Assembly: GCF_041956535.1 (NCBI RefSeq)
Contig: NW_027192198.1
Location: 566,714-630,713 of the forward strand
Origin: Calcarisporiella thermophila CBS 279.70
Lineage: Eukaryota > Fungi > Calcarisporiellomycota
DNA: 64,000 nucleotides
Direction of reading: 5' to 3'
Part shown: positions 4,907 to 64,000 of the stretch, one piece after another
How positions within the stretch are numbered: position 1 is the first letter of the stretch
Layout: every line of letters begins with the position of its first letter
Translations under genes and position numbers: made by a program
Notes under the pieces: model-generated
Database searches by the model: none
What the model was told of the DNA's origin: nothing
The model's input: the letters and a program-made list of their open reading frames with translations, nothing else

Positions 4907-5407
4907 TTAATCCGAAGACTGTGAAGGCGAGCATGATTTCAGACTAAAGTTCTCTATTTTCAACCCCTCATTTTCCTTGCTTAGCTCATTGACCCTACAT
5001 TGCAACTCTTTGATATAAAAACAGGCCTCTTGCAACACAACAGCTCGGTGGCACTTGTCTCCCTGACCCGCGGTGCTCGGAATGACCTTCACAAGTTCAC
5101 ACAAGAGCTGATTAATAAGATCGCGTCGCTTGCGCTCTAAACGGCTATGGGCTTCGCGGCGTTTTTTAATTCTCTCGAGTGCAACATGGCTATCGACATT
5201 TTTGCGGTTCAAGAGGGAAACCCCATTGACGGAGAGACTCTTACGTGTGCGCGACTGGCCCGGGAGATTATCCGGGGAATAACAGCGCATTATGTCGTCG
5301 ATGGGGTGAAACTGCATGGAAACAGTATTCTCGTGAAATGAGGGCGATCCCTCGGTGGCCAGAGTCGTCGCGGGTGATCCAAAGAACGGGTTGGCCCAAC
5401 TCTCCAT
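4907..5407 (-). CDS. Basic helix-loop-helix transcription factor (H-E-R basic region, CACGTG class), intronless
   Basis: KKRREAHSRLERKRRDLINQLLCELVKVIP...KCHRAVVLQEACFYIKELQ followed by a coiled-coil tail. Confidence 0.9.
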   Translation of the reverse strand: MESWANPFFGSPATTLATEGSPSFHENTVSMQFHPIDDIMRCYSPDNLPGQSRTRKSLSVNGVSLLNRKNVDSHVALERIKKRREAHSRLERKRRDLINQLLCELVKVIPSTAGQGDKCHRAVVLQEACFYIKELQCRVNELSKENEGLKIENFSLKSCSPSQSSD

Positions 5408-61432: not shown

Positions 61433-62508
61433 ATCAATACAAGTGGTTTGTAAATAACAAGAAGCAAATAAGGGAGTAAGAAGATATTAGGGACTAAGAT
61501 GAATATAATATTCTATAACTGAGCGATATGAAACCGAATAGTTAGCTACACCCGCTCTTCCGCACAAGAGTCGCGTTAGTATTGGAAATACATCATATGT
61601 GGCTTGTGCCAATTAATTTCACATTAGATATTTTAAAATAGACCGGTCGAAGATTCCATTTTATATTATATGCAAGTCCTAGGAGTCCGGTAGTTGACAA
61701 CAGATGGGATCATAAACTGGAAGTGCTCGCTCTACTATTGCATATTCTTCTCATAGAGTACTAATTTCTTAGACATATTTATCTTTTAATAGCTAAGTGT
61801 TTACTTCAATTCAACAATATTGAAGTATGCTAACCAATGTGTTTCGTTTAATCACGTAGACCAAGCGACTCACGGTCTATTGCAAATGTAGAATGGTCAA
61901 ACACATTTATGGCAGGCGTTGGAAACTCGTCGCAACGTTCACCATTAATTCGCATCAATTATCGTAAGACTGCAATTACTTACTCTAGATCAAAATATAA
62001 AAAATAAATCCGGTATAAGTTTAACATCAACTGACGACGACATGCTGGCGATCTGTCGTTTCCTTTTTTTTTATGCAACCGTCAACGGTTGATCCCAATA
62101 TCCAAAAGCCTGCCATATTTAGAAAGCTAATCTCGAGATTGCAAATATGACGAGCTAAAATTTTGAAATATATTGATTTCTCAGTTTGGACTGTAAAAAA
62201 GCACCAGTTTAGTTTCGAAAAAGGCTTAAAGACCTACAGTGTTCGCTTCCTATTTCTCTTGACATTTTCATCTAGGAAGACTATAAAATGATTCCTTCCT
62301 TTTTCTTTCCCGTTTTTTTCCTTTTGCTTCATTGTCATATGCACTCAGAGCACAAGTAGGATTTTACTTGAACCAAGACAGACATTGATCGAAAGTTACA
62401 GAGGCTCCATAAGCCTTTCAATATATTCAATCTACCCCCTATCTTTTCTTTATCTATCTATATACAATAATCTTATTGTAATCTTTGGCTGCATACAAAT
62501 ATTCAACG

Positions 62509-64000
62509 ATGGCGTTGAAACCTTGGTTAGTAGCTACATTGATCGTATCGGTGATAAGGCTAGGGGACGCAGCATTCAGTAAGTGGCATTAGATATGAAA
62601 TAGGAACATTATTATCCCTAATCTCTCATCTGCTCTTCCAATTCTCTGTAGTTCCATTGCACGGTAACGAGCATTTTACTGCCCAGAAATTGAACCCACG
62701 CTCAGACAATGGCCATCAACAAAGCCAAGAGATCTCACCCAACGATGTAATTCGCCCCTCCAACCACCGTGTTCATAATTCAATTGGCCCACGCGATGGT
62801 GGATTACTTAACGGTTTGCTCGGAGGCTTGTTAAATGGGAATGACAATAGCCCACAATCAAATCAGTACAGCCTCAAGTCAGGAGAAAACGGTGGGAGAC
62901 GTAATGGAGGTTTGCTAAACAACCTTCTGGACGGAGTGCTTGGCGAGATCTTGGGAAGTGATCAGGGCGAAACCTATTCATACAACAAACCCTCACGTCA
63001 TCGCCATAAACACAAGAATAAATCGAAGAAAAAGAAACACCATTCCTCGTCTCACAAGCATAAGAAGCATCACAAAAAGAAGCATGCACACAAGAAGAGA
63101 GATGTCCATTTAAAGAAGCGCGGTGTTGAGGATGGTGATACCTTTGGTGTAATCGAGGACGATTTTAATGAAATGGCTGACGAACTCGAGAAGGTATGTT
63201 TAATATTTTGTGATGAAAAACTATAGGAAAATTCGTTAAAATGGTTATCACATCCGTAGACTATGTATGAATCTTTCGGATTTTCGGTCTCAGATGAAGA
63301 CGACGATGAGGACGACGATGAAGACGACGGTGAGGACGGCGATGACGATGCCGAAGATGACAACACCGATGACGAAGATGATGAAGATAACCAAGAAGAG
63401 GATGAATGTGATGAAGATGAAGATGACGAAGATGACGAGGGTGAAGGTGACGAGGATGAAGGTGACGAGGACGAAGGAGATGAAGGTGACGAGGACGAAG
63501 GAGATGAAGGTGACGAAGAAGATGAGGATGACGAAGGTGATGAGGAGGATGAAGGTGATGAGGAGGATGAGGAGAATGAGGGCGATGAAGGTGATGTGGA
63601 GGATGAGAGTAACGAGGGTGATGAGGCCGACAGTGGAGAAGAAGGCGATGAGGAGGGCGATGAATTAGGTGGTGAGGAAGGTGGTGACGAGGAGGGCGGT
63701 GAAGGCGATGAGGAAAACGACGAGGAAGGAGGCGAGGGAGGCGACGAGGAGGGCGGCGAGGAAGAAGGTGATGAGGGCGGCGAGGAAGGCAGCGAAGACG
63801 GTGATGAAATTGGCGGCGAGGAAGGTGGCGAGGAAGGTGGCGAGGAAGGTGGCGAGGAAGACGGCGAGGAAGGTGGTGAGCTAGGCGGTGAGGAAGGTGG
63901 AGAGGAAGGTGGAGAGGAGGGAAATGAAGAAGGCGACGAGCTAGGCGTGGAGGAGGGTGACGAAGGAAGCGGTGAAGAAGGTGGTGAGATAGGCGGCGAG
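62509..64000 (+). CDS. Secreted low-complexity protein with GGLL repeats, His/Lys-rich block and very long Asp/Glu/Gly-rich region; runs off the window
   Basis: Exons 62509-62578, 62652-63193, 63260->64000 join in phase. Signal peptide MALKPWLVATLIVSVIRLGDA, dibasic sites, and a third exon open for 247 codons of mostly D/E/G. Confidence 0.85.
63293..64000 (+). repeat. Coding low-complexity repeat: GAY/GAR codons grading into 12-nt (GGEE) and DEG/DEGDE tandem units
   Basis: e.g. ggcgaggaaggt x4 at ~63815-63860 and gacgaggacgaaggagatgaaggt x2 at ~63464-63511. Confidence 0.9.

Follow-up and report, generated by a model that had tools for sequence, protein, structure and literature searches.

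A single gene of Calcarisporiella thermophila CBS 279.70 probably codes for a pre-pro-protein in which a polyacidic arm is joined to a beta-helix carbohydrate-enzyme-like protein that is itself probably secreted. Of the explanations weighed below, this is the one that we favour, with reasonable but incomplete confidence. The gene lies at the end of the window, i.e. the whole stretch of 64,000 nucleotides that was analysed, and the window end falls inside it. Once contig G000:C8 was read beyond this point, the whole gene, 4.8 kb long, was found to comprise eight exons and 1,432 codons. Its modules succeed one another in the following order: a signal-peptide-like exon, a disordered part of 180 residues, an acidic tract of 643 residues, a Pro-rich linker and a right-handed beta-helix of about 500 residues.

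Gene structure

A preliminary description of the window had read three in-phase exons at this locus. That reading was borne out and all the features described were found where they had been placed. The exons and introns are as follows.

62509 to 62578, + strand: exon 1, with the ATG at 62509; 23 codons plus 1 nt, phase 1; signal-peptide-like segment
62579 to 62651, + strand: intron 1, 73 nt, GTAAGT..TAG; position and phase common to the annotated paralogue P0001
62652 to 63193, + strand: exon 2, 180 full codons; disordered N-terminal region, candidate pro-region
63194 to 63259, + strand: putative intron 2, 66 nt, GTATGT..TAG; in-frame stop inside
63260 to 64000 in the window, ending at window-equivalent 66001 (L002:1261-4002), + strand: exon 3, a single 914-codon open reading frame
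L002 4062-4156, 4264-4294, 4354-4629, 4702-4939 and 5008-5309, + strand: exons 4 to 8, from alignment to P0001; stop codon at 5310-5312

The start codon has an A at -3 and a G at +4. Intron 1 is in phase 1 and lies directly 3' of the signal peptide both here and in P0001, a C. thermophila protein record that is the exact translation of a gene on contig C2 of the same genome. With P0001 as tblastn query, the remaining exons were recovered at 57-74% identity (42% for the short fourth exon), which fixed the splice sites. All seven introns have GT..AG ends and measure 59-107 nt, and intron 2 matches the other six in size and ends. On these sequence signals and on the logic of the gene, intron 2 would be removed. 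Exon 3 contains, uninterrupted, the acidic tract, the Pro-rich linker and the beta-helix domain up to its residue 186. The Asp/Glu/Gly frame is free of stops, whereas the remaining forward frames contain 11 and 106. It was confirmed that the open reading frames listed for the window give wrong-frame products only, because the true frame runs past the window end.

Should intron 2 be retained, two products would be made: a secreted protein of 215 residues encoded by exons 1 and 2 and ending in the intron, and a cytosolic polyacidic beta-helix protein started within exon 3. The second codon of exon 3 is indeed an in-frame ATG, some fungal members of the family have no signal peptide, and a length-matched protein search (503-1600 aa) returned no annotated full-length protein identical to the product of this gene. 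The stop created by retention is, however, separated from that ATG by 36 nt only, so that there is no room for a separate gene, and the ends and size of intron 2 are canonical and typical. The closest paralogue, moreover, begins with the same arrangement of a signal-peptide exon and a phase-1 intron, and the protein annotated for it includes the beta-helix. In the present gene, the composition turns acidic already at the end of exon 2. We regard two separate products as highly improbable. Public annotation seems either to be without the single-gene model or to draw it differently.

The acidic tract

The tract occupies the following position.

63290 to 64000 in the window, continuing to window-equivalent 65218, + strand: acidic Asp/Glu/Gly tract, 237 of its 643 residues inside the window

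An acidic domain of more than 230 residues without Lys or Arg had been noticed in the window. Its presence, its lack of basic residues and its character of extreme polyanion stand, and its extent is corrected to 643 residues. It contains 264 Glu, 134 Gly, 81 Asp, 59 Ser and 26 Asn, with neither Lys nor Arg, for a net charge of -345 (fraction of charged residues 0.54, net charge per residue -0.54). Basic residues are absent from the first 658 residues of exon 3 as a whole.

Such a tract could in principle be functionless: a short acidic linker would have expanded in frame without restraint and would be tolerated as disordered, with selection acting on the reading frame only, so as to preserve the domain that follows. 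Many nested tandem repeats are present, each with a period divisible by 3. The N-terminal region of P0001 contains a short patch of acidic residues, EDEDAD. Runs of at least 12 Asp/Glu codons are common genome-wide (450 overlapping matches vs 71 for the control), so a mutational tendency contributes to tracts of this kind. Codon counts speak against this explanation. One-step G-to-A changes at the first codon position turn Asp into Asn and Glu into Lys; 26 Asn were counted for 81 GAY codons, against 0 Lys for 264 GAR codons (Fisher p = 8e-16). For Gly, the same change has left 52 Ser(AGY) for 79 GGY codons and 0 Arg(AGR) for 55 GGR codons (Fisher p = 4e-10). The Asn codons stand in 23 distinct sequence contexts and the Ser(AGY) codons in 49, and their counts therefore do not stem from one amplified unit. 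All four bases are well represented at third codon positions (A.31, T.24, C.20, G.25), which indicates that the repeats are old and diverged, yet still purely acidic. Finally, a search of the rest of the genome with the tract gave no match at E<=1e-3. The codon counts point to selection against basic residues in the tract, and we hold a functionless arm to be rather unlikely.

The tract is missing from all four paralogues encoded in the genome, and among the best 150 relatives none exceeds 33% Asp plus Glu in any 100-aa window. The arm would have grown by in-frame tandem duplication after the split from the closest paralogue, and selection would have kept it free of basic residues.

The beta-helix domain and its family

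P0001 is 61% identical to the product of this gene over the shared exon (E 2e-78), and the exons align along all of P0001. The fold assignment comes from a model of this paralogue, this gene having been searched exon by exon. An AF2 model of P0001:130-687 (pLDDT 85, pTM 0.87) could be aligned over about 275-310 residues with polygalacturonases, alginate epimerases and phage capsule depolymerases at Z 24-28 (VIA-align), and Foldseek gave E values down to 3e-12. The modelled C-terminal domain is thereby assigned to the right-handed parallel beta-helices of the pectate-lyase-superfamily type. It was suggested earlier that the contig be extended to look for a GPI signal or other domains at the C-terminus; what was found there is the beta-helix domain and no hydrophobic tail of the kind seen in GPI signals, and GPI anchoring was rejected for this reason.

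Curated profiles match this domain weakly (PF12708, DUF4955, DUF6298 and the BT3328 family). For PF12708 the exon-3 part reached 14.3 bits vs a gathering threshold of 27, and 8 of 34 relatives matched at E<=0.01. With the profile of the BT3328-family hyaluronan endo-lyase (NCBIfam NF058554), relatives scored at most 38 bits over a partial profile vs a cut-off of 1100, and P0001 did not match. A sequence search of the PDB returned only noise with P0001 alone; the family profile matched 7chu, and this at its N-terminal cap only (E 5e-9). A literature search on DUF4955 and DUF6298 returned no paper.

Relatives number 1,969 at E<=1e-3 and 1,033 at E<=1e-10, and are mostly bacterial or metagenomic. 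The beta-helix is also carried by the four paralogues in the genome and by Lichtheimia homologues. Family members share the motifs GDD..IQ.AI, GPNVF, GSGHGW and VQ.PP (alignment A1); a conserved PH-x-R/K-W reads PH-x-H-F in this copy and in the C2 paralogue, and these two are sisters in a quick tree (100% SH-aLRT). From these sequence comparisons, the domain is placed in an uncharacterised beta-helix family common to Mucoromycota-type fungi and bacteria. Secretion is not general in this family, since the paralogue on contig C1 and the Lichtheimia members start without a signal peptide. As a separate observation, the genome contains many NodB-type deacetylase loci.

The N-terminal region and its predicted processing

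The signal-peptide-like start proposed in the preliminary description withstood inspection. Exon 1 has a Lys at position 4 and an 11-residue core of mean Kyte-Doolittle value 2.6 followed by G-D-A-A, so that n-, h- and c-region features are all seen. Such a segment would bring the protein into the secretory pathway. Exon 2 then carries the following features.

62792 to 62839, + strand: Gly/Leu segment 1, RDGGLLNGLLGGLLNG; GxxxG spacing, predicted helix 50-60
62897 to 62956, + strand: RR site and then Gly/Leu segment 2; RRNGGLLNNLLDGVLGEILG
62993 to 63100, + strand: His/Lys block with KR at its end (HKKR|D); the 35 residues preceding the last Arg have a net charge of +17, with 11 His in addition
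63110 to 63121, + strand: LKKR, best Kex2-type site (P4 Leu, P2 Lys, P1 Arg); predicted cleavage before GVEDGD

The His/Lys block of about 35 residues and the two KR sites (KKR-D and LKKR-G) are thus present as first described. Pfam matches of the block to ZIP and EOS1 were rejected as compositional noise (E about 0.1). Of the basic sites said to precede each Gly/Leu segment, PR and RR are both present and only the second is dibasic. The amphipathic character of these segments finds weak support, the Eisenberg helical moment being 0.25 for each. The AF2 single-sequence prediction for exon 2 (mean pLDDT 56) is mostly coil; the only helices coincide with the two Gly/Leu segments and with residues 163-179.

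Searches for relatives of this region, which had been recommended for the N-terminal 200 or so residues, yielded neither a homologue nor a homologous precursor of exon 2: the genome itself gave only a compositional match (E 0.14), a search of 5.8 billion proteins none among those of 99-315 aa, and the ESM Atlas features no usable match. Comparison with the N-terminal region of the paralogue revealed no significant similarity (BLASTP E>1). In shuffle tests of the same pair, the counts were 45/300 for the whole region, 143/300 for the tail, 162/300 for the head and 2/300 for the middle segment alone.

Three dibasic sites occur in exon 2. Kex2 sites follow the rules of an aliphatic P4, Lys at P2 and Arg at P1 (PMC8528282), to which HLKKR conforms. 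Six kexin P-domain loci were found in the genome, which establishes the presence of this protease family, and the N-terminal region of P0001 also contains a candidate site, AAKR|D. Proteins of the K2PP class have a disordered N-terminal region in their first half, followed by KR, RR or LxxR, and the mature secreted form no longer contains this pro-domain (PMC8528282). The low pLDDT of exon 2 accords with such a region, HKKR and HLKKR standing at about residues 172 and 179 of 1,432. The sequence thus fits a Kex2-type pro-domain with predicted cleavage at HLKKR|G.

A different use of these sites had been proposed at first. Kex2 would cut a single precursor into Gly/Leu surface-active peptides, a polycation consisting of the His/Lys block and an unattached polyanion, and these would form a coacervate, an adhesive, a wall coat or a mineral template. 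The dibasic sites and the kexins are compatible with it, as are the presence of oppositely charged blocks in one chain and the conservation of the two Gly/Leu segments, both predicted helical, as protein rather than as codons (9 of 14 aligned residues match, with the same codon in only 1 of the 9). The proposal is nevertheless not borne out. Within one exon the acidic tract runs into the beta-helix domain of about 500 residues with no KR or RR between them, and the polyanion should therefore stay attached to the domain. The opposite charges are far from balanced (about +17 to +28 vs -345) and, as reported above, no homologous precursor was found. Nor does the region conform to the KEPs, defined by at least three repeated motifs interspersed with KR, RR or KK sites, by repeats making up at least 15% of the protein and by a signal peptide, i.e. 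presence in the predicted secretome (PMC6339444). Here there are two segments; the first follows Pro-Arg, only the second follows a dibasic site and neither has one after it, and together they amount to about 31 of 1,432 residues, or about 2% of the length vs the 15% of the definition. Membership of the KEPs was thus rejected on both motif count and length share. The multi-product precursor is in our estimation distinctly unlikely.

The same modules could also act uncleaved, with the Gly/Leu helices and the His/Lys block binding anionic membrane or wall polymers and the repelled polyanion forming an extended spacer or brush that keeps the beta-helix domain at a distance from the surface. The order of the modules (a hydrophobic plus polybasic end, a strong polyelectrolyte, a globular domain) suits this arrangement, and any anchoring would have to be N-terminal given the absence of a GPI-type C-terminus. 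Against it stand the good Kex2 site HLKKR|G, situated precisely where the proposed anchor would meet the spacer, the six kexin loci and the shortness and weak amphipathicity of the Gly/Leu segments. An uncleaved anchor of this sort is given a low probability.

Proposed maturation and role of the arm

In the favoured explanation, a single secreted protein with a polyacidic arm, the disordered N-terminal region of about 155 residues that follows the signal peptide would probably be cut off as a pro-domain in the Golgi by kexin, at HKKR|D and HLKKR|G. The mature product would then consist of the disordered polyanionic arm of 643 residues, covalently joined via the Pro-rich linker to the C-terminal beta-helix domain. 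The likeliest role of the arm would be electrostatic: it may retain or guide the enzyme-like domain on polycationic matter (the chitosan of the wall or bound metal ions, for instance), help to keep it soluble, or both. A more elaborate version, which we consider rather improbable, makes of the protein an electrostatic targeting device. The selected arm would dock a glycan-active domain on the polycationic chitosan wall of this thermophilic fungus of early-diverging lineage or on a metal- or chitosan-rich substrate, and the Kex2-released pro-peptide with its His/Lys and Gly/Leu parts would shield part of the charge during secretion or serve as a peptide in its own right, active on membranes or metals.

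Should the model be correct, few disordered appendages described on secreted proteins of the carbohydrate-enzyme type would be as highly charged as this arm (net -345 in 643 residues), and there is internal evidence for selection on charge itself. The arm would offer a natural test case for polyelectrolyte arms on extracellular enzymes, be it for retention on wall or chitosan, for metal binding or for solubility at high temperature. The gene also points to the uncharacterised beta-helix family described above. On present evidence, it represents an unusual variant of a known protein type and does not reveal a new peptide-processing or coacervate system.

Comparison with known proteins

The C-terminal fold, as modelled on the 61%-identical paralogue, resembles that of pectate-lyase-superfamily proteins such as GH28 polygalacturonases, AlgE mannuronan epimerases and phage capsule depolymerases. 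Its N-terminal 'GDDT..IQ.AI' region resembles PF12708, and there is a weak likeness only to the BT3328 hyaluronan-lyase family. Unlike this protein, the relatives examined have no polyacidic arm, and no curated-family threshold is reached here.

Extremely acidic secreted proteins are typical of biomineral matrices and Ca2+ stores, e.g. Aspein, phosphophoryn and calsequestrin. These have in common with the present protein a very high Asp/Glu content in a product of the secretory pathway, but there is no sequence relationship and the tract is here an appendage of a beta-helix domain. We know of no mineralising biology in Calcarisporiella thermophila.

The KEPs, among them the alpha-factor precursors and Ustilago Rep1 (PMC6339444), are similar in their dibasic sites and related short segments, of which there are two here, and their signal peptide would have its counterpart in the signal-peptide-like start. 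They differ in that the present protein has fewer than three repeats, without regular flanking sites, and has a large globular domain attached. The likeness is greater to the K2PP class (PMC8528282) and to fungal secreted pro-enzymes, in which a disordered region after the signal peptide ends in a canonical site. The candidate pro-region is here unusually long and contains two Gly/Leu helices together with a His/Lys block of 35 residues, and the site is followed by 643 residues of polyanion instead of a folded domain. The C-terminal disordered regions of LPMOs (PMC8615602) likewise place long low-complexity disorder on a secreted domain of carbohydrate-active type. Those regions are weak neutral polyampholytes, with a mean fraction of charged residues of 0.13-0.18 and a net charge per residue of about 0, whereas the tract described here is N-terminal, 643 residues long and strongly polyanionic, with a charged fraction of 0.54 and a net charge of -0.54 per residue.

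Gene structure

The gene starts within the window (contig C8 of genome assembly G000, positions 566714-630713, i.e. G000:C8:566714-630713) and reaches beyond its end, occupying window-equivalent 62509-67311. It was completed on L002, a 10-kb extension of the contig in which position p is window position 61999+p. The model comprises 8 exons and 1,432 codons (4,296 coding nt), and all seven introns, of 59-107 nt, have GT..AG ends. The signal-peptide-like start, Gly/Leu segments, His/Lys block, KR sites and acidic frame of the preliminary description were all recovered in place.

Features of the gene and of the downstream region
From ATG at 62509, 70 nt, + strand: exon 1, signal-peptide-like start
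73 nt following exon 1, + strand: intron 1, GT..AG
62652-63193, + strand: exon 2, with Gly/Leu segments, His/Lys block and KR sites
62792-62839, + strand: Gly/Leu segment 1, in exon 2
62897-62956, + strand: Gly/Leu segment 2, related to segment 1, in exon 2
62993-63100, + strand: His/Lys block with a KR at its end, in exon 2
63110-63121, + strand: second KR, within LKKR, in exon 2
63194-63259, + strand: intron 2, 66 nt, GTATGT..TAG, with an in-frame stop inside
From 63260 (L002:1261-4002), + strand: exon 3, Asp/Glu/Gly frame, unbroken 914-codon ORF
L002:6679-8382 (window-equivalent about 68678-70381), + strand: ORF fragments with AMP-binding signature YTSGTTGFPK
L002:9527-9796, - strand: further ORF

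In the exon 1 product, residue 4 is Lys, and a hydrophobic core of 11 residues (mean Kyte-Doolittle 2.6) is followed by small residues. Exon 3 encodes 10 residues, an acidic tract of 643 residues, a 75-residue Pro-rich linker and the start of a globular domain. The borders of the five further exons were fixed by tblastn with P0001, the annotated protein of the closest paralogue on contig C2 (57-74% identity, 42% over the short fourth exon). Because the true frame runs past the window end, the ORF list of the window gives wrong-frame products only, as had been described. Of the C-terminal elements for which extension of the contig had been proposed, a GPI-type signal is absent from the extended model, which has no hydrophobic tail, and another domain is present, namely the globular domain after the tract.

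Judged from sequence, with splicing of intron 2 inferred, these exons very probably form one gene. Intron 2 has canonical ends and a typical size, if it were retained, the stop and the following in-frame ATG would lie just 36 nt apart, and the end of exon 2 is already acidic in composition. The signal-peptide exon and phase-1 intron are common to this gene and the C2 paralogue, whose annotated product includes the beta-helix. The competing reading of two separate products draws on the C1 paralogue and the Lichtheimia family members, which begin without a signal peptide. A length-matched search with the beta-helix exon among public proteins of 503-1600 aa returned the C2 record and no identical full-length protein; this counts against the single-gene model, and the gene may be missing from public annotation or be modelled differently there.

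The downstream AMP-binding ORFs resemble a fatty-acid transport protein or very-long-chain acyl-CoA synthetase. Neither they nor the minus-strand ORF suggest a functional link to the gene.

The C-terminal beta-helix domain and its relatives

The portion of the globular domain encoded by exon 3 identified four paralogues in the genome, the closest at G000:C2:1468590-1472285 (L004, 61% identity), followed by copies on C17 (L005), C1 (L006) and C3 (L007). P0001 is an NCBI/UniRef record from Calcarisporiella thermophila and the exact translation of the C2 sequence. The species holds five paralogous copies of this uncharacterised beta-helix family. In an exhaustive HMMER search, the relatives numbered 1,969 at E<=1e-3 and 1,033 at E<=1e-10, the majority unnamed metagenomic or bacterial multi-domain proteins, with one cluster from Lichtheimia species (Mucorales). 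A quick tree built on the shared region unites the seven fungal rows with a single unlabelled one at weak SH-aLRT support (84). It pairs this copy with C2 as sisters at 100% support, the longer branch being on this copy. The proteins of the C1 locus and of Lichtheimia open with MAG... or MGG... and lack a signal peptide, so some members of the family may be intracellular and possibly lipidated at the N-terminus.

Curated profiles match the domain below threshold: PF12708 scores 14 bits where 27 are required, DUF4955 and DUF6298 are likewise sub-threshold, and the BT3328-family hyaluronan lyase profile reaches at most 38 bits against a cut-off of 1100. The fold was modelled on the paralogue segment P0001:130-687, from a 34-sequence alignment. 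The model (pLDDT 85, pTM 0.87) has the shape of a right-handed parallel beta-helix and matched phage capsule depolymerases and lyases in Foldseek (E down to 3e-12). VIA-align gave Z of 24-28 against polygalacturonase 1bhe, 7chu, alginate epimerases, rhamnogalacturonase and tailspikes; these matches are effectively tied, and it is the fold class that is clear. Only this copy (exon 7, L002:4702-4939) and its C2 sister have PH-x-H-F-S-T-G in place of the motif PH-x-R/K-W-S-T-G found across the family, possibly a change at a functional site.

The acidic tract

The tract contains 264 Glu, 134 Gly, 81 Asp, 59 Ser and 26 Asn, for a net charge of -345, and the earliest Lys or Arg of exon 3 is at residue 659. 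The Asp/Glu/Gly-rich domain described previously is this tract, whose 643 residues lead within the same exon into the beta-helix domain. The coding frame has no stop in 643 codons, against 11 and 106 in the other two forward frames. Tandem Repeats Finder detected 29 overlapping arrays, all with periods that are multiples of 3, whose copies are mostly 60-83% identical (90-94% in a few short arrays of two to three copies). The even mixture of bases at third codon positions shows the repeats to be old as DNA.

Selection was assessed through single-step G-to-A changes at the first position of codons. Asn and Ser are frequent against their GAY and GGY sources (26 Asn vs 81 Asp; 52 Ser vs 79 Gly), whereas Lys and Arg are missing against GAR and GGR (0 Lys vs 264 Glu; 0 Arg vs 55 Gly), with Fisher p = 8e-16 and 4e-10 for repeat copies that are not fully independent. 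The Asn codons lie in 23 distinct five-codon contexts and the Ser codons in 49, and they thus do not stem from a single amplified unit. This argues for selection against basic residues, i.e. on charge itself. The rival reading, a functionless expansion, gains from the frequency of runs of at least 12 consecutive D/E codons across the genome (450 overlapping matches vs 71 in a reversed control; e.g. C2:1346005-1346093, C3:690558-690616 and C5:210921-210970), which is a caveat for charge selection. No other stretch of the whole genome matches the tract at E<=1e-3.

None of the four paralogues carries the tract, and among the best 150 relatives Asp+Glu stays within 33% in every window of 100 residues. 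Since this copy and C2 are sisters and the paralogues lack it, the tract arose after their duplication.

The N-terminal region and probable Kex2 processing

Exon 2 has no detectable homologue in the genome, among public proteins of 99-315 aa or in the ESM Atlas, and its similarity to the paralogue N-terminus is not significant. Single-sequence AF2 predicts it to be mostly disordered (pLDDT 56), with short helices only at both Gly/Leu segments and at residues 163-179. With a helical hydrophobic moment of only 0.25, the segments are no more than weakly amphipathic. Segment 1 has G at i, i+4 spacing. The segments share 9 of 14 residues, only one of the nine by the same codon; this small sample would fit a duplication of some age, constrained at the level of the peptide.

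Kex2 favours sites with Arg as P1, a basic P2 (Lys or Arg) and an aliphatic P4, and often cuts off disordered N-terminal pro-domains (PMC8528282). HLKKR↓G is a good match, HKKR↓D and GGRR↓N are poorer, and the N-terminal region of P0001 likewise contains AAKR↓D. The genome contains six kexin P-domain loci (G000:C5:1110032-1112179, G000:C7:757755-759762, and others on C17 and C19, two closely spaced opposite-strand pairs included), an unusually large set of kexin/furin-type convertases for a fungus. These sites and loci are consistent with the Kex2-processed precursor proposed in the preliminary description. Its release of several products including a free polyanion is not supported: no KR or RR lies between tract and beta-helix, so the polyanion should stay joined to the enzyme-like domain. 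Kex2-processed repeat proteins are defined by three or more repeats that have KR, RR or KK between them and make up 15% or more of the protein (PMC6339444); membership was rejected, with two repeats, one preceded by a dibasic site, and about 2% coverage.

Proposed function and comparison with known systems

The product is most likely a secreted pro-protein whose N-terminal region would be clipped off at the KR sites, the mature form being a polyanionic disordered arm on a beta-helix glycan-active domain. The alternative, an anchor, spacer and enzyme left uncleaved, has the well-matched HLKKR↓G against it. Overall, the features described earlier are confirmed and their interpretation is supported in part; the gene would encode a secreted beta-helix protein that carries both a pro-region and a disordered arm of extreme acidity. 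Plausible roles of the arm would be binding to polycationic chitosan, metal binding or solubility at high temperature. The Polysacc_deac_1 profile (NodB, chitin-deacetylase-type) has 29 matches in the whole genome, probably more than 15 genes, a number that fits a chitosan-rich wall. The disordered extensions of LPMOs have been described as weak neutral polyampholytes (PMC8615602). In contrast, this arm is a strong polyelectrolyte far outside their range: its fraction of charged residues is 0.54, and its net charge per residue is -0.54.
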